Source: Rebecca billardiae RCC1528
Taxonomy: Eukaryota; Protista; Haptophyta
Assembly (NCBI GenBank): GCA_965240325.2
Contig: OZ251224.1
Location: 3,968,001-4,032,000, forward strand
Direction: 5' to 3'
Length of the DNA stretch: 64,000 nucleotides
The notes under the pieces are model-generated. The model worked only from the letters and a program-made list of their open reading frames with translations. It was not told the DNA's origin and did not search any database. This document shows, one piece after another, positions 18,501 to 62,504 of the stretch. Within the stretch, counting starts at the first letter, position 1. Each line of letters starts with the position of its first letter. A program made the translations under genes and the position numbers.

Positions 18501-21472
18501 CCGCGCACGCGCGCGTGCGCTGGCGCAACGGCACCGCGCGCACGCTCGGCGCGACGATCGGCCAGCTCGAGCTGCGGCTGCCGCCCGGCGCCGAGTACGC
18601 CGTCGAGGACGTAGGCGCGCGCTCGCGGCTCTTCTGGTACACGTGGCGGCAGCAGCAGCCGCAGCATGGCGCGGCCGCGCACGCGGCCGCCGGAGGCGCG
18701 GAAGGCGGGGCCGCGCCGCAGGCCGCGGCGGCGGGCGGCGGCGGCGCGGGCGGCGCGGGCGGCGGCGCTCGTGGCTGCAGCGCCGCTGAACCCGAGCTGC
18801 TGTGCGGCCGCCTCTTCGTGCAGGAGGCGGGCGCGCTTAGCCAGTACGGCACGGTGGTGCCGCAGGCCGCGGCGCGGGCGACATCCGCGGCCGCTGCCGG
18901 GAGCGCCGCCGCCGCCGCCGCCGCCACGGGCGCAGGGCCGGGCCGCTCGCGCGAGGGCGGCGGCGGCGCGGCGCGCGTCGAGCGCGCGCTGAGCGGCGGC
19001 GCTGTGTGCGCCGCCGCCCCGGCCGGCGCGGAGCCGAGCGCCGCCGCCGCCTCGCCGGCATGCGCCGAGCTCGGCGCGACGTGCTGCGCGCCCTCCGGCG
19101 CGACGCCCGCGCAGCTCGTGCGCACGGCGATGGCTGAGCTCGAGCGGTGCGCTGCGCAGGCGGGCCGCGCGGCGTGCGGCGGCGCGGCCGGCGCATCTGA
19201 GGGCGCGGCCGATGCGGCGCGCGCGTGTGCACCCGACGGCGTGCGCCGCGCCGCGGCCGAGCTCGCGCGCACGCCAGAGGCGGAGTCGGCAGCTGCGGGC
19301 GGCGGGCTGCGCGCGGGGATGCGCGCGCCGAGCTCGGCGGCGGGCGGCGGGCGCGGCGGCGGCGGCGGCGGCTCGGCACCCCCCTCGCGCAGCCTGCCGG
19401 CCACGCCCCCGGCGCGCGACCGCGCCGCCGCTGCGTGCGGCGCGCGCGGTGAGAGCTGCGGAGGGCCTCGCACGCGCACGCCAGAGCCCGAGGCGCGGGG
19501 TGACGGTGCGGCGGGAGACGGCGCGGCCGGTGCGGCCGGCGCGCACGCCGCCGCGGCCGCACCGCTCGCCAAGCCGCGCGCAGCGGGCGGGCACGCGCCG
19601 CTCGGCGCGTGGGCGCACGGCTCGGCGGCGGAGACGGAGGCGTGGGCGTGTGCACACGCCGAGCCTCTGGCGGTCACACCCGAGTGCGCCGGGCGCAGCG
19701 CGCGCGCGCGCGCCGCGCTCGCGCGCGAGCAGGCGGAGGCGGCGGTGGCGACCGCGGCCGCGCACGCCGGCGCCTTCGTGCGCAAGCTGCGCGCGGCGAG
19801 CAGCGAGGGCGGCGAGGCGAGCCCGGCGCGGCCCGGCGCGGGCGCGGCCGCCTCCTCTGCGCCGCGCACGCCCGCGGCGCGCGTCTCGACGCCCGCGCCC
19901 GACGCGGTGGCCGCGGGCTGGGCGGGCGCGACGCCCGAGCGCGCGGGCACGGCTGCGCGCGGCCTGCTCGCCGTCGCCGGCGCCGCCGAGCGTGCCGCGT
20001 GGCGCGCCGCCGAGCTGCACGGCGAGTGCGGCCGCGCGGCGCAGGCCATCAACGACTTCGAGGCCACGACGCTCGCCGGCACGAGCGCGCGCGCCGACGG
20101 GCGGAGCGCGGTCGATGCGTTCGGCGCGCAGCTCGCGGCGCACGACCCATCGGGCGCGCTGTGCGCGGCGCTCGAGGCGCACGCGGTGCGGCACGCCGCG
20201 GAGACGCACGCCGTGGTGGCCACGGCCGTGCGCACGCGCAGCGAGGTGTGCGGCACGCGGCGCGCCGCGCGAGAGGCACGCGCGCGCACCCTCGCGTCAC
20301 CCGTGCCCCCGCCGCCCTTGCCCTCGCGGACGCGCGCGCCCGCGCGCGAGCGCAGTCGGATGTGCGCGCGGCGCGGCTGGCGCTGCGCCGGCTGCGCCGG
20401 CCGAGGCTCGAGCTCGCGCACCGCGTGTTCAGCCGCGCGGCCGCGGTGGCGGAGGCCGGGCTGGGCGAGGGTGAGGGCGCGGCGCCCGACGCGCGCGTCT
20501 CGCCAGCCTCTTCGGACGCAGACGTCTCGCCGCCGGCCGCGGGCGCGAGGGCGCTTGCGTGTGTGGCGCACAGCCGGCTCTCGGCGGCGGCGGATCGCTC
20601 TCGGCAGCTGCTCGAGGCGAGCGCGCAGGACGAGGCGGCCGTGCGCGCCGTGGTGCGCGCCGCGCACCACACTGCGCCGCGAGCCGCCGCGTGCGCGTGC
20701 GTGCGCGTGCGTGCGCGTGCGTGCGCGCGCGTGCGCGCGCGTGCGCGCGCGTGCGCGCGCGTGCGCGTGCGTGCGCGTGCGTGCGCGTGCGTGCGCGTGC
20801 GTGCGCGCGCCTCTCCCTCACGCGCCCCTCCTGCCACCGCCGCGTGCGCCCGCGCCGGCTGCGACTCGGCCGCCACGCGGGGCCCGCCGCGGCCCGCCGC
20901 GCTCTCAGGCCGTGCTCGCCTCGCCGCACACGCCGTGCGCCGAGCGCGCCTCCGCCGGCAGCGCCGCGTCCTCGCTCTGCGCGCCCTCGACGCCGCCGAC
21001 GCTGCCCTCCGCCACGCCCGGCTCCAGAGCGTCGCTCTCGCCGCCCGAGCGCGGAGCGACGGCGGCGCTGTCCGCGCCGCCCTCGGCCGAGCGCACCGCC
21101 ACGCCGGTGGGTGCTCAGGACGAGGCGCGCGTGCAGCGCATGCGCGCCGCCCTCGAGCAGCAGCGCCAGACGCTCAGCGCGCAGCGCGCCGCGCGCGGCG
21201 CCGGACGGCCGCGTGTCCCGCGCGCCGCGGCGGCGCCCTGCTCGCCGCCCGCGCGTCGCGCCGCTTCGGAGGCCGGCGGGGCAGCGCCGGAGGAGGGCGC
21301 ACGCGCCGTGTCGCCCGCTGCTGCCGCCACCGGCCTCTGCGCGAGCGGCAGATCGGACGCCTGCACGCCGACTGCACTCGGCGCGGCCGCGCCACTGCGC
21401 CCGCGCCCGGCTCACGCGCCCGCGGCCGAGCTGCGCCGACAGGCGCAGGCAGTCTGCCCACGCGCGGCGTGA
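15519..21472 (+). CDS. Large Pro-rich type-I membrane protein (signal peptide, extensin-like stalk, TM, long low-complexity tail)
   Basis: ATG 15519 gives signal-like MAHAMSGILVVLALSFLTPG; introns 15577-15722, 20246-20355 and ~20653-20908 keep frame; TM LLLASSLAVVLAAAVVA at ~17445-17495. Confidence 0.75.
16560..17185 (+). repeat. Coding minisatellite encoding (PEPAPSPEPQPPPPPP / PEPAPQPQPPPPPP)n
   Basis: Near-identical 36-48-bp units directly visible. Confidence 0.9.
20690..20808. repeat. Intronic (GTGC/GCGC)n microsatellite
   Basis: Directly visible inside predicted intron 3. Confidence 0.85.
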
Positions 21473-31469: not shown

Positions 31470-32319
31470 TCAAGCTCCACCACTCTGCCACCAGCACGAG
31501 TTTCTCCAAAACTTCGCGGCTTCGCCGTCGCACCAAACTTGATTCCTGATGTGGAGTGTGGTGGCACTGTGCTAAGTGCTTGTGCCGAGTTGCTCATGAT
31601 CAGCGAGGGCGCCCGCCCGCCCGGGGCCCGAGTCGTCTTCGTCTGATCTGATTCATTTCGTCGTCCAGCAGGGTATGGGGGTACAGTAGACTTTGCGTCC
31701 GTCTTGTCGCGTCTCAACTCTCAACTCACGACCCAGAGTCGTGTCTCGTCATCGGCGTCGGCTGGCGAGCGCGCTCGCGATCGTCGGCCATCGGGCATCG
31801 GCGCCGCGACGATGCGCGCTGCTGCCTGCTACCGCCGCCACCCAAGATGTTACAGCTGTTAGGTCTCTCCGTAGCTAGATTCTAAACGTCTTTTGTCTAG
31901 CGTAGTCTCTGTCAATATACATCTCTCATGCTGGCTCTAAGATACATATGACCGCGTTCCGCGGTCCTTTTCCGTAGAACCAACGCAGTTGGGGGCCCGC
32001 GGCGCAGTGGTTGAGAATGAGACCGTGACGTCGTCAATCCGCACGGTCTGGCGTCTGCCTGGCAGTCAGACAGGCAGCCGCACCGTCTCGGAGAGTGAGT
32101 GAGAGTCAGACCCGTCCGTCGGACTCGCGGCGCGTGAATGGGCGCGCCGACGGCCAAGGGTGGCCGGCACGGGACACCAGCGGACGGGCCGCGCGGGGAA
32201 GCGGGGCGGCGCGCGCGCAGGGCGAGAGGCGCGGACGGGCCGCGCGGGGAAGCGGGGCGGCGCGCGTGCAGGGCGAGAGGCGCCGCGCGGCGCGGGCCGG
32301 CGCGTGCGCGCGCGCGCGC

Positions 32320-33120
32320 GCACCTGCTTGAGGTGCTCGCGCTGCGCCATGCGCTCGACGAAGGGCCGCTGGTCGCTCAGCCGGCGCGCCTCGGGCCGGC
32401 ATAGCGAGAGCGCGCGCCACTGCTGCCCGCCCACGCTGCGCAGCCACGCGCAGACCGAGCGGAGCTCGGGGTGGGACGAAGCGAGTGGCGTGTCGCGCCC
32501 GCCGCCAGGCGCACGCGTGCCCTGCTCCGCACCGCGCCGCCGTGCTCGCCCGCCGCCTGCTCCGCCGCGTCGGCCTCGAGGATGGCGGCGGCCAGCGGCA
32601 GGCTGAGTGGCGCGCGCTCGCCCACCGTAGCTTCGAGGGCCGTCCACACCTGCTCGAGCTGCTGCAGGGCGTGGACAAGGGCAGCGCGCGCGCCCAGCGC
32701 ATCCGTGCCGCGTGACGCAGCGCGTCGAGCTCGGCGTCTCGCTTCGCCAGCTCGGCGCCCAGCGCCTCTGCGCGCACGCGTCGAGCTCGGCGTCGCGCTT
32801 TGCCAGCTCGGCGCCCAGCGCCTTCACGCGCACGTGCTCGTGTATCTGCGCGCGCACGGCCTGCGCGCCGCCGCCCATCTGCGCGCGCAGACTCGGACTC
32901 GTCGCGGCTGGCTGCTAGGGAGTGCTAGGGTGCGCGCCGCGTAGTCGATGGCCAAGGCCTGCAGCCAGCGCGCCTGCACCGAGAAAAGAAGGCGCGGCAC
33001 GCGCGCTATAACCCAGTCCACGCAGACACGCGAGCGCGTGCTCGAGCGGCGCGCCGGGGGCGACCGTCCACGTCGGCCGCGCGGGAGCCGCAGGTACTCT
33101 CGCGTGCCTGCGCGACGCAG
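32320..33120 (-). pseudogene. Frameshifted gene fragment(s) with coiled-coil and intron-like segments inside element X
   Basis: Coding-like pieces in different frames (QIHEHVRVKALGAELAKRDAELDA x2, LQQLEQVWTALEA.., PFVERMAQREHLKQ followed by a GTGCG donor). Confidence 0.5.
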
Positions 33121-33592
33121 CGCGCACGCACAGCGAAACGGGCGCGGGGTAGAATTCAGGAGAGCGCCGCCGCCCGCGCACCACCCCACCGAGAGTGCGC
33201 ACATGCGCACGCCACGACATGCAGCACGACATGGCGCACGATTGACGCAACGCCCGACAGACAGAAGCCTTCATCGACAATCCGCGCGCGCCCGCAAACG
33301 CGGCCGCGCGCGCGGGCGGGCGCGCGGGCGTGCGTGCGCCACCCGCGCGGGAGGCGCCCGCGGCCGCGCGGGCGGCGCGCGCGCGGCGCGCGCTCCGCGC
33401 GGTCGTCCACACCGATGGCGGTCGATCGAGGGCTCGCCCCGTTTGGCGGTCGATTTTGATCGAGGGCTCGCCCCGTTTTTGGAGCGAGCGCGTGCCGCGC
33501 GCCCCCTGGCTCCCAACTGGGTATGATAATACCCACAATTACCCAAAATGACCTTATGCCCCCAACACCGTTATCATAGCGAGCCAATGTAC

Positions 33593-33809
33593 TGATATGA
33601 TAGACTGAACGATAGTACCCACAATTACCCAATCAAGAGGCGATACAGCCCTTGCCTTGCTCGCTATGATATGATAGACTGAACGATAGTACCCACAATT
33701 ACCCAATCAAGAGGCGATACAGCCCTTGCCTTGCTCGCTATGATATGATAGACTGAACGATAGTACCCACAATTACCCAATCAAGAGGCGATACAGCCCT
33801 TGCCTTGCT
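33593..33809. repeat. Perfect 74-bp tandem repeat (x~2.9) within element X
   Basis: TAGACTGAAC recurs at 33601, 33675 and 33749; core TACCCACAATTACCC also at 33530 and 33938. Confidence 0.95.
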
Positions 33810-34291
33810 GAATGTCTCGCACTATTGGAGTTGGTTGGACTCGGCTATAATGTTGATCAACTGTCGTTCTAGTGATGGCATCTTGCGGCGGCGAGGCCAT
33901 ATTATTTTACTATGGTCACACTACATTAAGGAGAGTCTACCCACAATTACCCTGCCTCGCACACTTGGGCGTGGGTTTCGTTGATTCCTCTGTTCACTAT
34001 TCAAGACGGCGGACGCGCCCTTTTTCGACGCTAATGCACCTGTAAGGGAGTCTCAAAATCGAAACTCGGTCTCCTCCAGCCCTAAAAAATCGCCCCCCGT
34101 CCCTTTTTTCTTGATCAAAGATCTTTTTGAAACGTGGTTCGGGCCCGCTGGTGCGGGCTCCACGCTGCGCGCTCCGCCCTGCACCGCGGGCCATTAATAT
34201 ATGCATGATACAGCCACAGTCGCGTATTATAACATGAATATATATCTCGATGATGATGATGCAATTCGCGATCATCATGATATTCGAATAA

Positions 34292-35928
34292 TCATGTTGT
34301 GTCGTCGTCGAGCTCCTTTTCGATGAAGACGCGCTCGAGTCTCTCCAGCTTCTCGTGCAGCGCCTCGTTCTCGCGCTTCACGTCGTCGTAGGAGCGCTGG
34401 AGCAGGTCATTGGAGATGCGCAGGTGCGCATTCTGCTGCCGCAGCTGCAGCAACTCGCGCTCGAGCTCGGCGAGAGCGGCCGCGGACTGCGCCGTCGGCA
34501 GCTGCGCGCTGTGCGCGTGCGCGCCCGGGCCCATGGCGGGCTGCATCGGCGGCGGCGCGGCGTGCAGCGCGCCGAGCTGCTGCGTGAGCGCCATGTTATG
34601 CGCGCGCAGGCCGTGCACCTCCTCGCGCAGGCTCTTCAGCGACGCGGCCATCCCCGACGCCTGGCTCAGCTGCACCACAGGCCGGTTCTGGATCTTCTTG
34701 GCCGCGTGCAGGTAGTTGAGCGTGTGCGTCGACTCGTCTGCGGACAGGGCGGCGGGCGAGACGCAGCCGATCATCATCGCGATGCTGCTGCCGCCGAGCG
34801 AGTCGGCGAGCAGCTTGGTCAGCTTCGAGTCGCGGTAGGGCACGTGCCCCGCCGGCCGCCCCGACTCGAAATGCGCCGAGAGTGCCGCGATCACCTGGCC
34901 GAGCACCAGCAGCGAGCGGTTGATGTGAGCGGTCTCGCGCGCCTGCCCGCCGACTGAGCCGGACTGCTGCAGCCGCTCCGAGCCCGCCAGGTCGACGAAG
35001 GAGAGGCGGCCGTGCGTCTCCACGGCGTGCGCCACGCCGGGCGCGCCCGCGTGCTCGTCGAGCGCGATCTCCTCCCTCGACGTGAGCTGCACCTGCATGA
35101 TCGAGTGCGAGCGCGACGAGTCCTTGTTCAGCTGGTGCGAGCCGACCTGCGGCGCAGTCCACAGCCGTCACGCGCGGCGGGGCGCCGGAGCGCGCGGCGC
35201 GCGCGCGCGCGCGGCGTCGGCAGGGGTGTCAGACTGCCAGCCCGCGACCCGGCGGCCGGACACGCGCGCGGCGCCGCGGCCGACAGCCGCGCGCGCACCG
35301 TGCGGTTCTTCGTGCCCTCCCTGAAGACCATCATGAGCTCGTCGACCGTCTCGCAGTCGACCACCAGCAGCCCCTCGACGAAGAAGCCCTGCTGCGCGTT
35401 CCAGCGGATGGGCAGGCCGGTCGACGCGGGGTTGAGGAGGTCGTTGATCTGCTCGTTGTAGATCTCCAGGTACGACGCGGACACCGCGTACGACACGCCC
35501 GCCCGGCCGGACCTGTGCGCGTCGAGCGCGTTGAAGAGGTAGCGCACAGCGCGCGGGATGATGCCGTCGCCCGCGCTGCCCTCCGCGGAGGCGGCGCGGT
35601 CGGCGATGCCCTCGGGGCCGGACATGGTGAAGGTCTTGCCCGACCCCGTCTGCCCGTACGCGAAGACCGTGGCCGCGTACCCCTGCAGCGCCGCGTCGAG
35701 CAGCTGGCGCATGTCGGTGCGCTCAAACACGTGCTGCTGGTTGGACCCGCCCAGCGCCGCGTCAAAGGTGAGCTGCCGCGGCCCCACCTGCACGGTGCGG
35801 TCGTCCAGGCAGCGCACAGACTCGCTGTCACCACGCGCGCGCTCCATCTCGCTCGGCGGCCGCACGCGCGCGACCACGGTGATGCCGGAGGCTCTTCCTG
35901 GCGGACCGTTGCTCATGGCGGCCGCCAT
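34292..35928 (-). CDS. Kinesin motor protein, KIF12-like; exons 35928-35299, 35146-34292
   Basis: VARVRP, FAYGQTGSGKT, YLEIYNE, NKDSSRSH (restored by intron 35147-35298), FVDLAGSE, HVPYRDSKLTKLLADSLGG; PIRWN..GFFVE resembles KIF12. Confidence 0.93.
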
Positions 35929-36118
35929 CGTGTCGCTGAGCACACTCAGCGACCGCGCGACGATTCGATGCTTTCGGCTTTCCTTTGTCACTGTATCGAA
36001 GGGACATTACACAGTCAAGGCACTCGGTGTATCGGTCAGTGGTTTGAGGTTGGGTGAGGGTGGTGGTTGGTTGGGGGCTGGCCAGGGTAGGGCTGGAGGC
36101 TTCGGCCGCCAGTCTGAT

Positions 36119-36152
36119 CACCCGGAGCCCGTTATAAAGGGGAATTTAAAAA
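36119..36152. mobile_element. Solo left end of CAC-ended MITE family C
   Basis: CACCCGGAGCCCGTTATAAAGGGGAATTTAAAAA is identical to 9802-9835. Confidence 0.7.
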
Positions 36153-36503
36153 AACAGCACGGTCTACTACTGGTAGCTACTTTAGCTAGTAGTACAATTA
36201 TAAGCACGACTACGACTGGATCTTGACGATGACCAACGGGGCGGTCAGACGTGACCAAGGCTGTTGATTCAGATATTGATCAGACTTCAGACCATTGTCC
36301 AGCCTATACCAGTAGCATTCACACATGATATATGTGATGATGATAGTAACGGTCATCCCGGCGGCGCGGTGAGGGCGGCGCGTCGTCGTCCGGAGTCGCC
36401 TCCGTGCCCTCCGTCGCCTCGCGCGCCGCGCGTTCACGAATCACGATCAGTGCGGAGCCCTGCAGACGCATGGTTCACAGTCTGGCTTCGTCAGGGCCTG
36501 CTG

Positions 36504-39500
36504 TCATGAGAGGGTCGGCGGGGAAGCCAGGCCGTCGTCCACTGCCGCGGGGCTCACCAGGCCGTAGTGGGCGGGCATGCGCTCCCTGCGCCTCGGCGGC
36601 GAGTCTGGGTCGGAGTCGATGACGTCCGACTCCGAGGCGGTGGCCCCCACCATCGAGCCGCTCGGGTGCATCGCCTTGATCGCAGCCCACGAGCCAGATG
36701 CGGCGAGGCCGGAGCGCTGCCGCATCCGCTGAGACCACGTGAGCTCGGCGCCAGAGGCCGCCAGCCCGGACTGCGCGCGCCGCCGCCGCGGCGCAGGCTG
36801 TGCAGGCTCCGACGCCGCCGGCGCCGCCGCGAGCGCCGCGGAGCGCTGCTCGGCAAGCGCCGCGCGCTTCGCCGCGAGCGTCTTCAGCACCGCCTTCTGC
36901 ACCGCGGGCAGGTAGCCGTGCACCGTCTCGTTGAAGCCCTCGACCGTCGCGAGCTCGACCGCGCGCAGCAAGTGCGCGTCCTCCAGCTCCGTGCGCGCGC
37001 GCGCGTACACGCAGTGGAACGCGTCGATCGAGGAGATGGTCAGGTTGAGCGCGCGCTCGTCCGACCCGACAGCCAGCACGTGCACGTCGTCGAGCGAGCC
37101 GCCGATCGCGCGCCACGCGTACAGCTCCATCGCCGCCCAGAGCCGGTCGACCAGCGTCGGCCCCCACAGCACGAGCAGGCTGTGCGCGCTCGCGAGGTGC
37201 AGCGGCATGCGCGCCACGTGCGCGCTCGGCTCGAGCGTCGCGTCCGCGCTGAGCTCGTCCAGCCACACGCACGGAGGCCGGCCGTGCTCGGCCGCAAAGT
37301 CGCGCGCCCAGCGCGAGAGCGCGAGCCGCTTCTCGTCCGCGTCGTCGTGATGCGAGTGCACCACGTACGCGTCCACGTGCGCCGCGCCCGCGGCCGCGCC
37401 TCCGGGCGAGGCGGCGGCGTTGAGCCAGCTCGGTCTCCCCGGGCGGCGCAGGCTGGAGCGCCGGCCGGGGCGCGCGCCCAGCATTGGCGCGCTGTTCTTG
37501 CGCTGGGCCACGGGGCTGCCAGCGCACGGGCTGGCGCAGCCGCTCCCCGCCGACCTCCAGCGGCTGGGCACGGCCTCCGCCTTGCGCGCGGGCAGCTCCG
37601 GCGAGGGCACGAGGGCGGAGGGGCGCCGCCTGCCACCGGGCAGCTCGGGCGACGACAGAGTCATCCACCCGGGCAGCGCGCTCGGTCGCTCCTCGGACGG
37701 GCGGCCGCTGCCGCTGCCGCGGCCATGGCCACGCACAGCGGCATGCTCCTCGGACGGGCGGCCGCTGCAGGATGGGCGGCCGCTGCCACCCCAGCTTGGG
37801 TCGCTGGGCGCGGTAGCCTGCGGCTCTGAGGAGCCGGCACCACTGCCACAGCTCGCGGCACTGCTCCGCGCCACCCTGCGCTCCTCGGACGCGCGGCCGG
37901 AGCCGCGCGATGAGCCCAGGCGGAAGCAGCCGCGCTCCTCCGAGGGCCGGCCAGAGCTGAGCGTGCGCCGGCCTGCGCGGCTGCCCGCCTGCTGCTTGGC
38001 GCTGGCCTGAGCGCCGGGCGTGCCCAAGGCCGCAGCCGAGCCGGCTTCGCTGAGACAGCCAAGGCGGCGGGGCAGTGGGGACGTGCCTGCGCCCGGCGGA
38101 GGGCCCGGCGTCTCGCCACTCGCCTCCTCAGCGCGCGCGCTCAGCGCACGCTCCGCGCTCACGACGCTGCGCGCGCCAGTGGCCGGAGGCGTCGTTGATG
38201 AGCCCGACGGCTGTGCGTCCCGAGCGGCCAGGACCATCGGCTGGCTGAGCAGCGAGAGCGAGCACACGGGCGAAGCCACCGCCTCATGCACCGCGGTGGC
38301 CTGCGACGCACTAGCGCCGCCCCGCGCGCGGCTCGCGCCGCTCGACGGGCTGCCGCCACCTGCGCCTGCGCCCGCGCCGTCCGCCTCCGCCTCCGCCTCC
38401 GCCGCCTCCTCCTCCTCCTCCTCGCTGCATCCCTCCTCCGTCACCTCCACCGCATCGACGCGCGTACTGAGCCGCCGCCTGCTGGCCGCGGGCGTGCCGA
38501 GCCCGCGCGCGGCCGTCGCGCCGAAGAGCGAGTGCAGCGTGCGCGCCTCGAGCGGCACGGCGCGCATCGAGCCGACGCCCACGGCGCACAGACGCTTGAG
38601 CTCGAGCGGCGACAGCGCGTCGGCGCGCAGGCTGCGCGCGCTGGCGGCCGCGCCGCCCGCGCCCTGCGCGCTGACGAGCGCCGCGAGGGAGGCGTGCGCG
38701 CCGCGCGCGTGCGAGCTGTGCAGCAGCGCCGACACCAGCCGACGGCGAACGCGCGCCGATACCATCACGAGCGCAGGCGGGAGCGTGAGCGCGAGCAGGC
38801 CGAGCCGCGCGCCCAGCAGCCACGCGCGCCCCTCGAAGGAGCCGGTGGCCGCGCCGACGCCCAGCGCCGCGCCCTCGAGCAGCGCCACGCCGGCCGCCTC
38901 GAGCCCGACGGACGCGGCGCCCCCCTCCATCAGCCGGTACGAGCGGCCCCAGTGCCGCGCGAGCGCGCAGGCCCAGCCGAGAGCTGCGCACGCGTGCGCG
39001 GCGGCAGCGCCGACGCCGAGCGCACAGATCGCCACCTCGGCCGGCCGCGCCAGCGGCTCGCTCGCCGAGCTGCCCAGCTCGGCGGACAGCTTGGCGACGG
39101 CCGCGCCCGCGGCGGCGCCGCCGAGCGCGAGCGCCACCAGCCGCATGTGCACGAGGTGCGCCTGCACCGCCGGCGCGGCGAGCGTGGCGAGGACAGAGCA
39201 GAGAGTGCCCAGCGTCGCGAGCAGCCCGGCGCGCAGCGCGTGCGCATCGTCGGCGGCCTCGACGGCGTGCTCTGCCAGCCCGAGGCTTCGCGCGGAGAGC
39301 GCGCGGTCGACGCAGAAGGCGACGAGCAGCAGAGGCACCGCCGCCGCCGCGCAGCCGCTCGCGCCGGCCGCCGCCGCGCCCGGCTGCCGGCTCGCCTCTG
39401 CGCGCGCGTTCTCGAGCAGAGCGACGATCTCATCGAGACTCATCGCGCCGTGCTTGCCCGTGAGCGCGCCGACGCGCCTGCCGGCCTGCAGCGGAGACGC

Positions 39501-41417
39501 GGTCAAGCTCGCGCCGCCGCCGCCCTTCCCGGGCGCGGGGTTGCCGCCCACGTCCAGGGGGTTGACCCCGGCCGCGCTGACGAGGCTGACGACGGAGTTG
39601 GTGCGCGACACGCCGTTGGAGGCGCGGCTGCTCGCGCGAGACATCCGGTTCGAGCCGCCGTTCGGAGCAGCGCCCACGTCGCGCGCGTGGAGCATCTGCC
39701 AGCGCTCTGTCAACGGCGCCGGCGACACCGCGCCTCCCACCGCGCTCGCGGACCACGCTGGCGGCTCGTTCGGATCCTGCGGCTGCAGCTGCGCGCCCGC
39801 CTCCGCCGTCGCCAGCACCACGTCGTGGTAGACCGACCTGCAGCGCGCGGAAGGAAGGAAGGACGGGAGAGGAGGGCATGCGACGGCGCAGCTGAGCGTG
39901 CGCGTGTCGGGACGGGGCGCACGGCGGGGCGCCGGCGCCCGTCGCGTGCCGCGCCCGTCGCGTGGCGGGTGCGCGCGCGCGGCGCGCACCGGAGCAGCGA
40001 GAGCACTTCGCTCACGTTGATGGTCTGCTGCCCGGACAGGTACAGCCGGTGGCACGCGCCGTTGATGCGCACCGTCTCGGCCGGCGGGAAGAGCTCGCGC
40101 GTGCGCGGCAGCGCCGTCATCAGCGCCACCACGTCGTACGGCTTGACGTACCCGTTGAGGAACTCCTGAATCGCCGAGCTCTCGACCAGCTGCGCGAGGC
40201 CCTCCTGCTCGAACTCGTCCCCGGCGACGCCGCAGAAGGTCTCAAAGTACCACTGCTTGGTGCAGCGCGCGGGCAGCTCGCCTCTGCACAGCCGCTGCCA
40301 CAGCCCCTCGAGCCCGAGGAACTGCGCGCTGGAGAGGTACGCCATCACCTGCGCACGCGACGCGGCAGACGCGGCACACGGCACCCAGCAGGCACGGGCG
40401 CGCGGCGGGCCGGCCGCGCAGGTCGGCAAGTGAGCGCGAGGGCGAGGGCGAGCGCGCGCGCGCCTGTCCGCCTGACTGTCTGCCCTCCCTCGGTCCGAAG
40501 CAGCCCCAGACCAACAGGCCTGCCTGCGTACGCAGCGGCGGCGGGCGGTGGCGCGCGCCGTGCGCTCGCGCGCACCGGGCAGTACGTGCGCTCGGCAAAG
40601 CTGCGCGCCAGCTGCATCGGCAGCATCGGCACCGCGTGCCGGCTCGTGACGCTGAGCGGCACGCCGTGCGCGAAGCAAAAGTCGTACACGGCCTGCGCCG
40701 CCTCCACGTCAAAGCCGTTGTTCACGGACGAATCCGCGCGCCAGCCGTGCGTCGCGGAGGCGTCGCGCTCGAGCCCAGCCTGCACGGCCACGTGGCGAAC
40801 CCTGCTGCGCACGAGTGCCGCCTCCTCGGCGATCGCGTCCGCAAAGTCGCGCAGGGAGCTGATGAGCACAACCGTCAGGCCCGCTGGCGGCGCGGCTCGC
40901 AGCGTGGAGAGCAGCAGCTCGTGGCCACGGACGAGCCGCCCGGCATCGACGGATTCGTACCCATCGAGGCGATACTCGTGCGGCTGCGGTTCCAGCGCGT
41001 GCCCCTGCGAGCCCACGCCCACGGGCACGTCGACCCCAATATGGTCGAGCACGCACAGCGCCAGCCGAGCGCGGGCCTCGGCCTGACCGCCACCGTTGCA
41101 CACGACCGCGCGCAGAACGACCTCGCCCTGCTTGTGCAGCACGCCAAGGACCAGCAGTGCTTTGATATCGTCCGGATCCGGCCCCTGCAGATCGGCGCGG
41201 TGGCGCGCAGCGCGGGACGTGAGCGCGAGTGCGTTGGCACGCCGCCGCGCCGTGCACGCGCACAGACGGCCGCACATACCGGGTCGGTGACGAGCAGGAT
41301 GTCCGGCGGGATGCGCTTGCGCGCGCCGAGCGTCCACGGGCGGGGCCGGCCCTTCACCCAACTGCCATCACCAGGCGGCGGGTCGCCACCCGCCGGGCTG
41401 ACGTGCGCGCGCCCCAT
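36504..41417 (-). CDS. 1479-aa fusion: nucleoside-hydrolase-fold (HopQ1/XopQ-like) domain + ~6 TM helices + C-terminal TIR-like domain; exons 41417-41280, 41184-40576, 40348-39990, 39837-36504
   Basis: Three GT-AG introns give a 4440-nt in-frame CDS. NH motifs LLVTDP/GPDPDD, VPVGVG, NN.FD.EAA..VY, PYD. TIR-like DAYVVHSHHDD..VWLD..LLVLWGPTLVDRLWAAMEL. Confidence 0.82.
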
Positions 41418-41985
41418 GTGGTCGGGAGCCTCGAGGGGCACGCTCGGCAGCGGGGCTCTCCTCTGCTGAGCGTCCTCTGCTGAGCGTGACGTCAATTTTA
41501 TAGCGCGCATCAGCCCAGGGATGTACATCAGCGTGGAGAATCGGCAAGCCCTCCATACAGGTAAATACTTTACTGCTGCACGGTATTCCGTATTCATCGT
41601 AAGCGACCAGCGCATATTGGAGGATAGTTAGCAACATTTCGACCTGAGTAAAAAGATGCGATCTTCGTCAAGCCAGCGGTTCCTTGGGTGCTGGGGGTGA
41701 ATTCCTCGCGTATTTCACCTCGTGGGTATTCAACGATTGCTATTCATATTCTGAATTATGATGGTGTCCCGACACTTCCAAACTTCGCAACGCGCCTCTA
41801 CAGGTAATTCGTTGGTCACTTGAGCAAGATTCTATCCGAAAATTTTGTCAACAGCTTGACGAGAAGGAATCGTTCATAATCGATATTTTGACGAACGTTC
41901 ATCCGATTTTGTCATAACCGATGTGGTGGATCATATCTCTATTAATTGGGTATTAGATGCCGGGTCTATCAGTTTTCCGGCGGCG

Positions 41986-42078
41986 CTACCATCGGCGACG
42001 GCTTCATGGGCGGTGACAGTTGGCGGGCGTCAATCTCGCCTGCCTGAGCTGTGTGCGTCTCTTATTCTTAGTAAACTG
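41986..42078. mobile_element. Partial copy (body + right TIR) of mariner-type MITE family D
   Basis: Near-identical to 61536-61632; ends TGCGTCTCTTATTCTTAGTAAACTG|TA. Confidence 0.75.
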
Positions 42079-42126
42079 TAACGGGCGCCAAGCATCACGG
42101 CGCAAGTCCGTAACCGTTTCTGCACG

Positions 42127-42804
42127 ATGGCGCATCCCGAGCTCCTCGCGCCCGCTAATGCGTTCGTCCACGATGGACCGTTCGGCGGGCCGGCGTGGCC
42201 GGTGACGACCTATACGGTGCAACGATCGCTTAAAACATCGTCGGCCGACTGCCGCGTCGGTTTCGAACCAGCATCGGCCGCGCACCTCGCAGCTGCTTCG
42301 CGCCGACGCCTCGTGGAGCTGCGCACCGCACGGCCACTTGCCGAGCGCCCGCCGGCGAGCTTGCCCGCGGGGCTTGATGGCTCTGGTACGTGGGTCAGCG
42401 ACTCGCCTGTCGTTGCAGACGCGCTCGCACACCTGCCATGGCGCTCTCCGGACACGCAGCGGGAATCTGACCGCATCCAAGTCCTGCAGCAGGACAAGGC
42501 AACTGGCCAATTGGACCTCACTGGGTCGGGAGATGGGGTTTGCCCGAACTGCTCAGCCACGCGGCGTGAACTCGATGGGCTACGTGAGCGGTGTGATACT
42601 CTCGAGTACGAGCTGGCACGCGCGCGCGTGCTCGTGGACAGCGCCGCGCAAGCCAGGCGATCCTCGGCGCGGCGCGCCCGATCTGCCGGGCGGCGAAGGG
42701 GACCAGTGATGCAGCAATCTGCTGAGAAGCCTCCGACGACTCGCGCTGCCAGGCGGGTCTCGCCTTCACACAGACCGGGTCGCCGCCCGGCGTGGACCAG
42801 GTGA
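42127..42804 (+). CDS. Hypothetical protein with CxxC and short coiled coil
   Basis: ATG-initiated 225-aa ORF containing CPNCSATRRELDGLRERCDTLEYELARARVL; followed by 3'-type intergenic DNA. Confidence 0.4.
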   Translation: MAHPELLAPANAFVHDGPFGGPAWPVTTYTVQRSLKTSSADCRVGFEPASAAHLAAASRRRLVELRTARPLAERPPASLPAGLDGSGTWVSDSPVVADALAHLPWRSPDTQRESDRIQVLQQDKATGQLDLTGSGDGVCPNCSATRRELDGLRERCDTLEYELARARVLVDSAAQARRSSARRARSAGRRRGPVMQQSAEKPPTTRAARRVSPSHRPGRRPAWTR

Positions 42805-43166
42805 ACCAAAACGAAATACTAGGGTCGCCGACAGACCGGACGACAGGCGCGGCACGTACTGCCATCCGCGCAGCCGCGCCGCCCGGCGCGCGCGCCGGCC
42901 GCGGCGGGGCACTGGCGGCCACTGGAGACTGAGTGTAGTGTTAAATCGCAGGCCCGACTGCTAGTCGTATTCTCAGTACGGCACCTGGTCCTGTAACTCT
43001 GTTCAGCGAGACTGACAGTCATTAGCGCCAGCAGAACTAGCAGACTGAGAAACAGCGCGGTACTCCTGACGAGAGTCCGACTACAGTATCCGATCCGTCG
43101 TACTGTCAGTGTCACTACTGACGAACTATATACGGTGGCCGGTTCAGATCCAGGCCCGTAGGGCCG

Positions 43167-43623
43167 TAGTGGGGTCAGCCGAGCTCCGACCGTTACACTC
43201 TCGGGTGCCACAATCTCCCGAAATCTCTTAGCATGAACTATAACACGGATATATATTTACTTCAAGGACGAACTAGTTAGTAGGCGTTAAGGCTTAATTC
43301 CAGGGTGTAGAATCCGCCTGTGCCAATTTCAGACTGCCAAAATGTGATCTAGACGGTGCGATTCTGGTGCAAATGGCGAGATCACCTTGGAGACCGTGTA
43401 TCTCCCCTACTAATGTTGCCGAGATCGCGTCGAGATTGAGGTCGTATATATCTCCAGTATGTGACATTTTTTCGCAAAACTTGTCAGCGTGACCCCAGCT
43501 TATTTCAGGCGAATATTGACATCCCGAAGTTTGAGAGCCTCATCTCAAGACGACAGGAAGTTGGATTTTGGGCCACTCACCCCCCTGCCCCCAGTCACCA
43601 GTGGCGGGGCTCTGACCCCTCTA
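43167..43623. mobile_element. MITE family A, copy 2 (inverted relative to copy 1)
   Basis: Full-length reverse-complement homology to 1964-2407; TAGTGGGGTCAG...CTGACCCCTCTA termini; no TSD retained. Confidence 0.9.
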
Positions 43624-43875
43624 TCTAGACTTATCAGCAGAGACCGCGGGACGGTATCGAGCTCAAGTGGTAACAGCCATAGGCACTAAACGGATGACTC
43701 ATCGGTCATCGGACCTCAGTTCTAAAATTCAAAATTGACGGCGCGGAGAGAGTCAATGCTAGTCAGAGAGCCGCAGACGCAGTCGCAGTCAGACTACAGT
43801 ACTCAGCAGTACTCAGAGACTCAGATGAGATCTCCAGGATCTAGCCAGGCGGGCGGTAATACTGTAGTACTAATA

Positions 43876-44197
43876 CAGAGCCCCGCCCGACTGTGGCCAT
43901 GGGGTGTACGTGGCCCCGCAAAATGAAAATCCAACTTTCTGTCGTCTTGAGATGAGGCTCTCAAACGAATTGTTCGGGCGGATGTCAATATTCGCCTGAA
44001 GTGTAACCCGAATGGGGGCACGCTGGTCCAACAAGTTTGCCCGTTTGGCCAAAAAAGTCCGACCGGACATACTGGAGATATACGACCTCAATCTCGACGC
44101 GATCTCGGCAACATTAGCAGGGGAGATAGTTGTTTCGAGATTATTTCGGGAGATTGTGTAACTCGGGAGTGTAACCGTCGGAGCTCTGACCCCACTA
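43876..44197. mobile_element. MITE family A, copy 3 (internally deleted, left end decayed)
   Basis: Matches 1973-2180 and 2350-2407 with many short insertions; ends GAGCTCTGACCCCACTA. Confidence 0.85.
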
Positions 44198-44217
44198 AGA
44201 GAGATCGAGCAGAGTAA

Positions 44218-44224
44218 GAGAGAA

Positions 44225-44315
<91 letters not shown>
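44218..44315. repeat. (GA)n microsatellite
   Basis: Directly visible. Confidence 0.95.
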
Positions 44316-44317
<2 letters not shown>

Positions 44318-45076
44318 GCCAGAGAGCAGAGCAGACGAGTCACGAGACTGCGACTGAGCCTGAGGAGCCCTACTGTCAGAGAGACGAGGACGAATACTTC
44401 GTCTGAGCCGTGCCTAGTGCCTACTCACGGCTTACATAATGGCCCGCGGTGCAGGGCGGAGCGCGCAGCGTGGAGCCCGCACCAGCGGGCCCGAACCACG
44501 TTTCAAAAAGATCTTTGATCAAGAAAAAGGGACGCGGGGGCCGATTTTTAGGGCTGGCGGAGACCGAGTTTCGAATTTTGAGACCCTCTCTACAGATGCA
44601 TCACGGAGAAAAAAACCGCGCCCACGACATTCCCCTAATCAATCGTGGACGGCCGGGCGTGAGAGTTCACTTCTGTGTGAAGTAGGACGGTTACAAGTCC
44701 AATACAAGCGTCAGCTTCTTTGAGGCTATATTTGCACGTCCTTACGGGATCAGCGAAGTAACCAACCGATATATATTGGCTTCGTCGGGGTCGTATTCAC
44801 TACTGGAGAACATTTGCACCGCGCTTCGTCTTCATATGTATGGTTCACACAGGCATAAAGTCGCTTCGTCGGGGTCGTATCCACTATACTGGAGAACATC
44901 ATTTGCACCGCTTCGTTTTCATACATTGTAATATGTATATATATGGTTCGTGGACTGCTACGGGGTCGAGCAGAATATCATCGATATTCATCAGGCGCAC
45001 GTGTGCGTATTCATCATCAGCCTTCGGGAATTGGGAGTAGCTATTGGCCTTTTGCCCTCTGGCGAGCCAGTTGTGC

Positions 45077-46169
45077 CAAGGGTGGTCAGGGTCGCCGACT
45101 CCAGCGGAGGCCGGCGCCGGAGGTTCACCTCCGATTTTTTGGAGCGGCGCGGCGCGCGGGGCCGCCGCCGCTGTGGCGGGCCGCTCGGGGTGTGCACGGC
45201 GTGGGCTCGTGCGGCCGCTGCCGCGCACGCCGAGCGATCCGGCGCGGGCTCGCGGCTTGTCGATGGCCTCGCGCGCCGCAGCGCGCCGCAGCGCGACGCG
45301 CGCCTTGCCTAGCTTCGCCTGTCTCGCGCCTTGGCCGCCGTGCACGCGTGCGCCGCCAAACCGCAAGCTCGGCATAGCTCTCAGCCGAGCGTGCACGTGC
45401 CTTGCGCGACGCGACGCGGGCATTGCCGGCGGGTGATGTAGCCGTAGTGCGAGCGCGCGTCGTGAAGCCTCGACGCGGATCGTGAGTGTCTTCAACGTCT
45501 CGGTCAGCTGTCGACAACAGCTGACGGCACCAACCACAAATGGACACCACGGTCCTCCGTTGAACGACTCTCAGGGCTATCGCGACGCTGCAACTCGTGA
45601 AGACTAGTCGAGCGTTGTTGTCAAGAAGACACACGCCACTATGTCATGCGTGCGGGCCTTGCGTGACGATGCGACATGACGATCGCCCCGGCAAGAGAGT
45701 CAGTCGTCAAGCTTTCAGCACTGCTCAACGCACAGACGGTCCACGCGCGTACGCGGCATCGTCTCATTGCTCTCGATCCGCGCCGAGGCTTCACGACGCG
45801 CGCTCGCACTACGGCTACATCGCCCGCCGGCAATGCCCGCGTCGCGTCGCGCAAGGCACGTGCACGCTCGGCTGAGAGCTATGCCGAGCTTGCGGTTTGG
45901 CGGCGCACGCGTGCACGGCGGCCAAGGCGCGAGACAGGCGAAGCTAGGCAAGGCGCGCGTCGCGCTGCGGCGCGCGAGGCCATCGACAAGCCGCGAGCCC
46001 GCGCCGGATCGCTCGGCGTGCGCGGCAGCGGCCGCACGAGCCCACGCCGTGCACGCCCCGAGCGGCCCGCCACAGCGGCGGCGGCCCCGCGCGCCGCGCC
46101 GCTCCAAAAAATCAGAGGTGAACCTCCGGCGCCGGCCTCCGCTGGAGTCGGCGACCCTGACCACCCTTG
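45077..46169. mobile_element. Foldback element FB2 (P-superfamily/Galileo-like), 1093 bp, nested in element Y
   Basis: ~400-bp TIRs (45077-45482 / 45774-46169) starting CAAGGGTGGTCAGGGTC; 291-bp spacer; 7-bp TSD GTTGTGC on both sides. Confidence 0.88.
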
Positions 46170-46231
46170 GTTGTGCGCACTTGAGCAGGCCTTGAGCAGG
46201 CTCGAGGCCACTTTTTTGCGCTCACGTGGAC

Positions 46232-47130
46232 ATGATGCCGATCACGTCAGCTGGCGACGCCGACGAGGACCGCGCTCGCCGCGTATTGAACGTGCTGCTC
46301 GAATCCGGGGCAGTGAAGAAGGTGGCTAAGAGCACGCTCCAGAGCATCGCTGCTGCCATCTCAGTCGTGAGGCACAAGCAGGACGTGCCCTCTGCGGCGG
46401 TGAAGTACAACGTGCCCAAATGGTCGATCTACAACTTCGTTCGCAAGGTCCGCACCGTGCTGGAGGACGAAGGCGCAATCGGCAGGGGGAGCGCGACGCG
46501 ACTGATCACCGACTTCACCACGCGCCCCGCAGGCCAGCTCCCTCCCTCCTCCTCACCCGGCCCAACAGCTGGCAGCCGCTTTGCGGCACTCGCCGCGCTC
46601 GACGGCCACGGGGAAATGCCCGCTGCAGAGAAAGCACAGCCGCAGCGGGGGCGCCCGGCCGGCTCGCTCAGCCTGCTGGGCACGCTCAACCTAGGCGTCA
46701 CGTGCTACCTCGGCTCGCTGCTGGCGGCGCTGCTCGCGTGCCCTTCCATCGTCTCGCTCGCCACATCTGCCGCGGCTGAGCAGTCCACCAACCCCATCGT
46801 GTCCCGAGCATGCGCTCGCTGGCGCTCGCGCATGTCAACTGCGAGTGGCCCAGCGACTCAGCGAGGTGGGGCCGACGCGTAGCTTGCTCGAGCCGCTCCA
46901 CGACGCGATCGCGGAGGTCTGTCGGTGGACAACGGCGTTTGGGCAGCAGCAGCAGGACGCGTGCGAGGTGCTGTACAAAATCATGGAGGCCCTGGCTGGC
47001 TGCGACGAGGCGTGCTCATACCTTGGCTTGCTCGAGTGCCTCGGTCAGCTGGCGAGCGAGCAGCCCTCGCAGCAGCAGCGCGTGCCGACGCCGACGATCT
47101 CGCAGCAGCAGCGCGTGCCGACGATCTCAG
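46232..47130 (+). pseudogene. Frameshifted, truncated HTH(psq-like) + USP/peptidase C19 N-terminal fragment
   Basis: AAAISVVRHKQDVPSAAVKYNVPKWSIYNFVRK (HTH), GTLNLGVTCYLGSLLAAL (Cys box) and, after a frameshift, FGQQQQDACEVLYKIMEAL (QQD box); no His box. Confidence 0.65.
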
Positions 47131-47647
47131 TCGGCCATGACTTCGACTGTACACAATCGGCGCCTCGCCGGCGGCTGCGATGGGCCCGCCCGGCCGCGCG
47201 GCGGGCGGCGGCGCGCCGCTGGAGTCTACTCGCTGCCGGCTGCCGGGCTCGCGGCCGGGCGGGCCCACTCTCGATCGCGACGGAGGGTGCGACGGAGGGT
47301 GCACCGCCACCGCGGGCCCCGAACTACGTTCGTTCTACGGAAAAGGACCGCGGAACGCGGTCATATATATATATATATATATATACTCAACGACATGAAT
47401 AACAGTCGTATGACAATATATATCGATCCTCTTCGACGCAGCGGACCGATGACTCGGATTATTGCCGCCGATCAGTGCTGCGTGTGGCAGAGTACGGTCG
47501 TCGTCGTGTCGTCACATCAGCAAATTAGTCGCGAGACGCGGACGCCGCGACTCGCCGACTGCGCCGATCCGGGTCAAAATATACGGCGCGCAGACTGATG
47601 ATGGGTAGACTAGTCACGGCTCTGATCGCGTCGTCTTAAAACGTGCA

Positions 47648-61509: not shown

Positions 61510-61678
61510 CAGTTTACTAAGAATAAGAGACGCAGTACCACCGGCGACGGCTTCCGATCATGGGCGGTGACAGTTGGCGGGCGTCGATCTCGCCTGCCTG
61601 AGCTGTGTGCGTCTCCTATTTTTAGTAAACTGTACTCGCCTGCCTGAGCTGTGTGCGTCTCTTATTCTTAGTAAACTG
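61510..61678. mobile_element. Tc1/mariner-type MITE family D with tandemly duplicated right end
   Basis: TA|CAGTTTACTAAGAATAAGAGACGCA ... TGCGTCTCTTATTCTTAGTAAACTG|TA; the right ~46 bp is repeated (ends at 61632 and 61678). Confidence 0.85.
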
Positions 61679-62504
61679 TACTCTAATGCTGCTTTGAAGC
61701 GGCCTATATTGAATCGGTGATGCAATTCTGCTGCTGGCTGGACCATTTCATATAATAATTCATTTCCGGCGTTATCACTATCCGGACTCAGTTCTGAGTT
61801 CACACTGTCGCTCTAAGTCAGACTAAGTCGGACAAAGTAAGTGTCAAAGACTGAAAGACTACGGTGCCAATAACTGAAATCTGAATCAGTCTCAGAGTCA
61901 GACCAGTTCGCGGACTGGACTTAGCTAAGCGTACGGAGTAAGTTATAATAGACGTACTAAATTAGCGCGGTATTATTAACACTGAGAGCCCTTACGGGGA
62001 TGAGAGCGGTGCCCGTATAATCATGACCGCTCCTCGGCCCGGCGAATCGGGTTATCGGCAGGGCCGCCTGTCACTGCGTCATCTGGAATGTCAGAACTCA
62101 GATCGGCTCACGGCCCGCGACTCGCGGGTACCCGATTACCGGAGTTACTACGTTACCGTCGCGCCCGTGCGGCATACCGGGGCTGGCGCGCGGAGCGGCC
62201 GAGCGGGGCGCAGCGCCAGCCTGCGTCTTCACCGCAAAAGAGTGAAAAGTCGGGAGGCAGGCCGGCAGGTAAGCAGGGTTTAGGATCATAGCAATGGGAT
62301 CCAGTCGCGTATACATGATGCCGCTGAGCTTGCTGCGCGATCTGGCCGGAGGCCGAGCCTTGAAGATCATGCTCGCCACGAGTTGGCGGGCTCATGATTC
62401 ACCTACTTGCAGTCGCCAATCAAGCGGGGCAGCGGGCGCGGTACGCCGTACCGGCGCTCCGTCGAAGAGTGTGTAGCGTGCGCGGCGCCTGGCGCGGGTG
62501 GCAC

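Follow-up and report, generated by a model that had tools for sequence, protein, structure and literature searches.

Group 2 Helitron-like elements (HLE2; Helitron2/Helentron) share a layout in which the terminal inverted repeats are asymmetric, the 5' repeat takes part in a hairpin, and the 3' repeat is followed by a stem-loop (PMC3627910, PMC4067079, PMC5148889, PMC11417382). In Helitron2, the 5' asymmetric terminal inverted repeat (5'-ATIR) lies 0-2 bp from the end and pairs with sequence downstream to give the 5' hairpin, the 3' repeat is subterminal and sits just upstream of the 3' hairpin, and compensatory mutations preserve these terminal structures; non-autonomous Chlamydomonas Helitron2 elements have in common with their partners a 5' end of ~200 bp and a 3' end of ~50 bp (PMC3627910). 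The Helentron-derived HINE/DINE-1 elements described by Thomas and colleagues carry repeats (subTIR) of 12-15 bp, often palindromic, at distances of 2-4 nt from the terminus on the 5' side and 38-60 nt on the 3' side, along with a 5-10 bp palindrome 8-35 nt from the 3' end and internal tandem repeats, and they enter T-rich targets and leave the target site unchanged (PMC4067079). Fusarium Helitron2 elements have hairpins with GAA loops at both ends; a repeat of 12 bp lies 38-51 nt from their 3' end, and their joined-end products suggest a circular intermediate (PMC5148889). The HLE2 summary given with HELIANO lists short terminal inverted repeats, a stem-loop past the right repeat, and insertion between T and T (T/T, the slash marking an insertion point or element boundary here and below; PMC11417382). 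The distances published for the 3' repeat are 20-30, 38-51, or 38-60 nt from the end, directly upstream of a hairpin. Canonical Helitrons (HLE1) are defined by 5'-TC, 3'-CTRR, a hairpin ~11 nt from the 3' end, and A/T insertion, and both Helentrons and Helitrons have been reported to capture gene fragments. Here we analyzed 64,000 nt of the haptophyte Rebecca billardiae RCC1528 (assembly GCA_965240325.2, contig OZ251224.1, positions 3,968,001 to 4,032,000; this whole stretch is termed the window) and describe in it two insertions that are probably non-autonomous HLE2 elements of the HINE/DINE-1 type.

All results refer to this one 64-kb window, and what is said of the family is drawn from two copies. 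A previous examination of the letters alone, termed the sequence-only reading, had placed the two copies at the positions given here, and our analysis located them there in mutually inverted orientation.

44439-47363, + strand: copy 2, whole element, from the 5' A end to the 3' B end; the start becomes 44438 when insertion is read as T/T.
31949-34194, - strand: copy 1, whole element, with the A end at 34194 and the B end at 31949, in the orientation opposite to copy 2.

Both insertions measure 2-3 kb and have only their ends in common, since nothing else aligns between the copies, as the sequence-only reading had also found for the interiors. End-motif and similarity scans, diverged copies included, identified none in the 64 kb beyond copies 1 and 2. 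We read the A end as the left (5') terminal sequence, with the B end closing the element on the right (3'). At the A end, whose terminus reads ATGGCCCGCGGTGCAG..., the first 64 nt are identical in the 2 copies (chance expectation, 0), and similarity extends over ~175-189 nt at 90-92%. The A-end hairpin has an interrupted stem of 16-17 bp and a folding energy of -23.5 kcal/mol (DNA fold z = -3.7), and 0 of 200 shuffled sequences folded as well.

44439-44613, + strand: left terminal sequence (A end) of copy 2, ~175 nt, 92% identical to copy 1, with the first 64 nt identical.
34021-34194, - strand: left terminal sequence (A end) of copy 1, containing the 5' repeat (34179-34192) and the 5' hairpin (34142-34192).
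44441-44451, + strand: 5' asymmetric terminal inverted repeat of copy 2, GGCCCGCGGTG, 2 nt from the terminus.
44441-44491, + strand: 5' hairpin of copy 2, with arms at 44441-44457 and 44475-44491 and a 17-nt loop; the 5' repeat lies in the left arm.
44492-44504, + strand: small, weak stem-loop, CGAAC-CAC-GTTTC, directly after the 5' hairpin of copy 2.

The B end is shorter, with 54 nt that are 94% identical between the copies (three differences) and a last stretch of 19 identical nt against 0.06 expected. It ends in a perfect 7-bp palindrome with a GAA loop (fold z = -2.4 to -2.8), separated by a 13-nt spacer from a first stem-loop, which itself stands directly after the 3' repeat.

47308-47318, + strand: 3' asymmetric inverted repeat of copy 2, CACCGCGGGCC, ~45-56 nt from the 3' terminus.
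31994-32007, - strand: 3' asymmetric inverted repeat of copy 1, CTGCGCCGCGGGCC, complementary to the 5' terminus at 13 of 14 positions.
47320-47332, + strand: 3' stem-loop 1 of copy 2, CGAAC-TAC-GTTCG, 1 nt past the 3' repeat and 31 nt from the terminus.
31980-31992, - strand: 3' stem-loop 1 of copy 1, CCAAC-TGC-GTTGG; its second stem pair, G:C in copy 2, is C:G.
47346-47362, + strand: terminal palindrome of copy 2, GACCGCG-GAA-CGCGGTC, followed by the last base, A, at 47363.
31950-31966, - strand: terminal palindrome of copy 1, identical in sequence to that of copy 2.

These measurements agree with the sequence-only reading, which had described a shared A end of ~180 bp that folds on itself over ~16 bp starting 2 nt from the end and a shared B end of ~57 bp closing in the GACCGCG-GAA-CGCGGTC-A hairpin. 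Two of the three B-end differences fall on the partners of a single pair in stem-loop 1, which amounts to a compensatory change from G:C to C:G, and we roughly estimate the chance of obtaining such a pair from three random substitutions at ~0.01. Selection for base pairing in single strands predicts double changes of this kind, whereas selection on a site bound by a double-strand-binding protein does not. The change suggests that stem-loop 1 has been selected as a base-paired structure, as judged from one event in two sequences.

The 2 ends are also linked to each other by an inverted repeat, contrary to the sequence-only reading, in which they were not inverted repeats of one another. The A-end sequence GGCCCGCGGTG (positions 3-13) recurs subterminally at the B end as its reverse complement, with an exact match of 11 nt in copy 2 (44441-44451 with 47308-47318) and a match of 14 nt with one mismatch in copy 1 (34179-34192 with 31994-32007), where the 3' partner lies 45-59 nt from the B terminus. 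The repeat occupies the same place in both copies, and for each copy ~1% of random, GC-matched segment pairs drawn from the window give a match this good. In the whole 64 kb, the 9-mer GGCCCGCGG is present at four positions, all of them repeat sites of the elements. The 5' repeat, GGCCCGCGGTG(CAG), begins 2 nt from the terminus as first drawn, 3 nt from it under T/T insertion, and at most 4 nt from it on alternative starts. From 5' to 3', each element thus consists of 2 nt, the 5' repeat and hairpin, the conserved left end, the variable interior, the 3' repeat, a 5-bp stem-loop, the terminal palindrome, and a final A. In copy 2, a 6-nt tandem duplication (CACCGC CACCGC; 47300-47313) stands ahead of the 3' repeat, which without it would pair with 13 nt of the 5' terminus.

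A motif in direct orientation near both ends had likewise been reported before; it is exact in copy 2 but has 2 mismatches in the B end of copy 1. This motif consists of the 3' repeat and the small stem-loop; its likeness to the right arm of the 5' hairpin arises from the complementarity of each to the 5' terminus. At the A end, the right hairpin arm and the weak stem-loop CGAAC-CAC-GTTTC form the corresponding module, which recurs in direct orientation at the B end.

Compared with the described elements, every structural feature of HLE2 that can be examined on 2 copies is present. As in Helitron-1N1_CRe, FoHeli1/2, and HINE/DINE-1, the inverted repeat has a terminal position on the 5' side and a subterminal one on the 3' side, and hairpins occur at both ends. 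The assignment to HLE2 is supported by the 5' repeat, which starts 2 nt inside the terminus and doubles as the left arm of a strong 5' hairpin, by the 3' repeat, which lies 45-59 nt from the end and is followed 1 nt later by a 5-bp stem-loop, and by the compensatory change in that stem-loop, as reported for Helitron2 (PMC3627910). Support also comes from the confinement of GGCCCGCGG to the four repeat sites and the significance of the repeat in each copy, and from the asymmetry of the conserved ends, long at the 5' side (~175 nt) and short at the 3' side (~54 nt), as in HLE2. Further likenesses that favor the assignment are the internal tandem repeats of copy 1, found also in HINE/DINE-1, a host T on either side that is compatible with the T/T rule, the GAA loop of the terminal hairpin, as in FoHeli1/2, and the coding-like cargo with a truncated USP-like piece, which fits the capture of gene fragments. 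We therefore assign both copies, from their sequence features, to non-autonomous HLE2 (Helitron2/Helentron, of the HINE/DINE-1 type) with a probability of about 0.65, a value that reflects the small number of copies (two) and the definition of HLE2 membership by the RepHel transposase. The elements most likely represent a new family of an already described kind and no new class of mobile element. The sequence-only reading had proposed non-autonomous members of a TIR-less (lacking terminal inverted repeats, TIRs) and possibly undescribed group moved by a single-strand HUH-type enzyme. The conserved ends, unrelated interiors, and gene-like fragments support non-autonomous elements of the single-strand, HUH (rolling-circle) type, whereas "TIR-less" and "possibly undescribed" are not supported, as the ends have asymmetric terminal inverted repeats and match the Helitron2/Helentron layout; the comparison had been made with canonical Helitrons only.

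Several observations weigh against the HLE2 assignment. None of the 40 window open reading frames (ORFs) scanned encodes a transposase, RepHel and recombinases included. The copies are two in number, and their flanks are as compatible with a TA duplication as with T/T insertion. The 5' end has no clear T or TC start, reading (T)AATGG where HLE2 has T or TC, and a second, perfect 7-bp palindrome lies 1 nt from the 3' terminus. The direct-orientation module reaches into the small stem-loop at both ends, beyond what the logic of the repeat needs. The significance of the inverted repeat is modest (~1% per copy) against a background that is GC-rich and rich in CCGCGG, and the compensatory change, seen in two copies, is a single event (rough p ~0.01).

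Some of these features favor a different HUH or single-strand group, e.g., Replitrons (helicase-free, with a Y1 Rep) or an undescribed lineage, of which the copies would be non-autonomous members whose ends only resemble those of HLE2; we consider this unlikely. Replitrons have short direct repeats at or near both termini, a right-end palindrome, and mostly no target duplication, and they occur in algae, stramenopiles, and haptophytes. The present elements share with them the direct repeats near both ends, the right-end palindrome, and a host range that includes algae and stramenopiles, and they have a module of ~20-30 nt in direct orientation near both ends as well as an extra terminal hairpin and a 5' end other than T or TC that are atypical of HLE2. 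However, Replitron repeats are ~6 bp long and stand at the termini, whereas the direct module here is subterminal; no asymmetric inverted repeat or 5' hairpin has been described for Replitrons, and the direct repeat here mostly follows from the Helitron2 geometry of an inverted repeat plus hairpin. It is similarly improbable that the family is moved by a different or undescribed HUH transposase and that its ends only mimic HLE2, a case for which the duplicated arm-plus-stem-loop module, the extra terminal hairpin with its GAA loop, and the TA-centered target would be the distinguishing marks. Were it so, the elements would represent a further eukaryotic rolling-circle group beside Helitrons and Replitrons. 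IS200/IS605, a prokaryotic HUH family, likewise has subterminal hairpins on one strand at both ends, and it makes no target duplication, as is probably true here too, but its left and right hairpins are similar and come with tetranucleotide cleavage sites, whereas the ends here differ and are linked by an inverted repeat. Canonical Helitrons (HLE1) were rejected as a candidate, as the elements have neither 5'-TC nor 3'-CTRR and lack a hairpin 10-12 nt from the 3' end. In either orientation, their termini read (A)ATGG... and ...GGTCA, in agreement with the absence of TC...CTRR ends already remarked in the sequence-only reading. Like HLE1, the elements are without classical TIRs at their termini, possess a 3' hairpin and a variable, plausibly captured cargo, and probably leave the target unduplicated; they differ from it in the 5' hairpin and the asymmetric repeat.

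The flanks of the elements bear on two further explanations. TA borders all four termini, as had been noticed before, giving TA/ATGG... and ...GGTCA/TA in both copies. Both can also be read as T/AATGG...GGTCA/T, with a host T before AATGG and a host T after GGTCA. The flanking sequence fits T/T insertion without duplication and TA duplication equally well, and the TA-richness of the flanks weakens either reading. The window is eukaryotic, with GC-rich (65-85%) genes, among them those for a kinesin, SfsA, PP2C, FKBP, an MFS transporter, and a SWEET-type transporter, and with AT-rich spacers between them that contain (TA)n and (GA)n tracts.

Cut-and-paste DDE elements that duplicate TA, that is, Tc1/mariner-like MITEs (miniature transposable elements with inverted repeats), could account for TA at all four termini. 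Their TIRs would here be short and degenerate (TGGCCCGCG / TGACC-GCG), and the GC-rich palindromes would be transposase-binding sites; in a variant, 31949-47363 would be one composite of 15.4 kb that uses the B ends as 54-nt TIRs. We regard this explanation as improbable in either form. In its favor, the termini are TG...CA with a gapped inverted match of 9/13 (read by eye), the outer B ends are inverted and sharply bounded, as a composite would have them, and a genuine TA-flanked TIR element is present in the same genome at 43169-44195. However, the terminal match is poor beside the genuine TIR families of the window, whose TIRs span 60-410 nt, and Tc1/mariner-type MITEs, which also have TA on both flanks, possess long, well-matched terminal TIRs where the present ends match at 9/13 with a gap. 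The flanks are AT-rich and microsatellite-like, and TA is common there. The ends are strongly asymmetric (175 vs 54 nt), and the compensatory change in the stem points to base pairing and not to a site read by a protein. As for the composite, the inner A boundaries match the outer B boundaries in sharpness, a feature that a composite does not need, and the 10 kb between the copies contains ordinary host genes, e.g., for kinesin and nucleoside hydrolase.

The same dinucleotide at both junctions would also be expected if the elements were moved by a site-specific recombinase of either the tyrosine (Crypton-like) or the serine (IS607-like) type; they would excise as circles and recombine at a TA core between imperfect inverted half-sites. 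When joined, the ends give CGCGGTCA-TA-ATGGCCCGCG, an imperfect palindrome around TA (read by eye), and the direct-orientation motifs near both ends fit as well. We nevertheless judge recombinase-borne elements very improbable, given that the scan of the 40 window ORFs returned no recombinase gene. To our knowledge, long structured ends, a 5' hairpin, and a compensatory stem change have not been described for the Crypton-like or IS607-like groups, which also counts against this explanation.

All four element boundaries are sharp, since the similarity of the flanks is lost within 1-3 nt of the termini. This bears on the possibility that the copies are not mobile at all and are remnants of a local inverted duplication or gene conversion, or common regulatory or RNA modules. 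Such an origin would suit two copies only, lying 10 kb apart and inverted, and no copy was found in the public collections searched, an absence that is uninformative as those collections do not hold this genome. It is nonetheless quite improbable in view of the four sharp boundaries with unrelated flanks and interiors, the consistent pairing of an A with a B end, and the absence of a match to an Rfam family or tRNA; no credible Rfam family overlaps the ends, and no tRNA was found. Three simpler structures were rejected: a long terminal repeat (LTR) element, despite the TG...CA termini, because of the dissimilarity of the two ends; a 10-kb inner element using the A ends as TIRs, as its sharp edges face the wrong way; and a segmental inverted duplication, as flanks and interiors are unrelated.

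The junction of the kinesin gene with the A end of copy 1 is not an assembly artifact, because an independent Logan short-read contig from the same organism reproduces it; this contig breaks 22 nt into the A end, the expected behavior at a repeat. The Logan contigs that carry SfsA and kinesin end either at a (TA)n tract or 22 nt inside the element, with no empty allele among them. For the SfsA and kinesin sequences tested, Logan contigs of ERR14847148 and ERR14847151 (L035, L036, L037) were the sole 100%-identical public matches. The closest SfsA relative shares 55% identity, and among named organisms the best relatives come from dinoflagellates and a pelagophyte, so the lineage of this organism is poorly sampled. 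End-motif scans of viral and metagenome contigs, which do not include this genome, returned chance matches to the pattern only, as checked by blastn. An ORF spanning the A end had no match in the protein index, and 10 interior ORFs were absent from that collection.

Between their conserved ends, the two elements carry unrelated interiors with tandem repeats, coding-like stretches, and, in copy 2, a nested transposon.

45077-46169, strand not assigned: foldback-type TIR transposon nested inside copy 2; its TIRs measure ~410 bp, and the target duplication, GTTGTGC (7 bp), lies at 45070-45076 and 46170-46176.
46226-47200, + strand: coding-like cargo of copy 2 in two frames (46226-46879 and 46845-~47200), with a weak USP Cys box and a QQD-like box.
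32250-32950, - strand: coding-like cargo of copy 1, with GC3 (third codon position) periodicity and three phase shifts, in the same orientation as the element.
33593-33809, strand not assigned: internal tandem repeat of copy 1, 2.9 x 74 nt at 100% identity.
32180-32283 (2 x 51) and 32716-32834 (2 x 56): further tandem duplications of copy 1.

The foldback element is a later insertion into copy 2 and not captured cargo. In what remains of both copies, an AT-rich portion adjoins the A end and a GC-rich portion adjoins the B end, and the GC-rich portion has codon-like GC3 periodicity in the orientation of the element, with phase shifts. The Cys box in the cargo of copy 2 matches Pfam UCH at E = 0.0019, which falls short of the family threshold, and the nine best PDB matches of its ORF are all to USP30 or USP1 (E = 0.07-0.3). 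The QQD-like box lies in the next frame, and a search of this cargo for the His box of USP found none. The ORF had no match among 5.8 billion clustered proteins or 1.84 billion representatives, and Pfam and PDB scans of the copy 1 cargo (32250-32950) identified no recognizable domain. By its sequence, the copy 2 cargo looks like a truncated gene fragment. Gene capture had already been suggested in the sequence-only reading; the coding-like periodicity and the weak USP Cys box speak for it, but no parent gene was identified. It is plausible that the elements capture genes and that their cargo consists of captured, decaying gene fragments. The motif TACCCACAATTACCC is present five times in the AT-rich part of copy 1 (33525-33954), with 3 of the 5 inside the perfect 74-nt tandem repeat, and may correspond to the "central repeats" of HINE/DINE-1.

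Our direct observations comprise the architecture of the ends, the sharpness of the boundaries, the compensatory change, and the coding-like nature of the cargo. For the mechanism, we draw on established Helitron behavior and on proposals for Helitron2, and the enzyme, strand chemistry, target rule, and capture are what we infer. RepHel (an HUH Y2 nuclease with a Pif1-type helicase), supplied by an autonomous partner elsewhere in the genome, would nick the A-to-B strand at the 5' end, unwind it from 5' to 3', and recognize the 3' end through the subterminal repeat and the stem-loops. In the proposal of Bao and Jurka, the 5' hairpin is melted when the 5' and 3' repeats pair with each other, which also fixes the end point. 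RepHel would then join the ends into a single-stranded circle, and the element would enter T-rich DNA, duplicating no target sequence. If the 3' signal were bypassed now and then, or the template switched, host DNA would be picked up, and elements with identical ends would come to have unrelated, gene-like interiors.

If the HLE2 assignment is correct, the 5' repeat with its hairpin and the 3' repeat with its two stem-loops provide a clean terminal signature for annotating Helitron2-type elements in a very GC-rich and poorly sampled protist lineage. Such elements would escape standard Helitron finders, which search for TC...CTRR. The family would also offer this genome a route for shuffling gene fragments, e.g., the USP-like piece, and the compensatory change would be a small independent data point for selection on the HLE2 3' stem-loop as a base-paired structure.

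Other repeats and genes of the window were also annotated. The TA-flanked TIR element at 43169-44195 (TIR GTGGGGTCAG..GAGCTCCGAC.., Tc1/mariner-like) lies 240 nt upstream of copy 2, and the 43.1-47.4 kb region is therefore a small nest of transposons. A partial copy of the same Tc1/mariner-like element, with the same terminus followed by TA, was identified at 2050-2405. The foldback family has ~1.1-kb members (1.09 kb for the one at 45077-46169) with ~410-bp TIRs beginning CAAGGGTG..CAGGGTC, and a second member at 9899-11008, with its own 7-bp duplication (CTCCGGG), is ~60% identical to the first over its full length. The kinesin gene (34295-36006), which adjoins copy 1, is split over two frames at ~35098/35128, possibly by a short intron or a frameshift, and the Logan gene calls give kinesin in the same two pieces. 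A stop-free frame of 1940 codons with a GC content above 80% extends over 15650-21469; it contains periodic repeats of 12 and 18 nt at 16409-17166 and has no Pfam match. Direct and inverted repeats of 100-150 nt form a cluster at 5385-6648, and a 77-nt repeat is common to 42004-42080 and 61558-61680.

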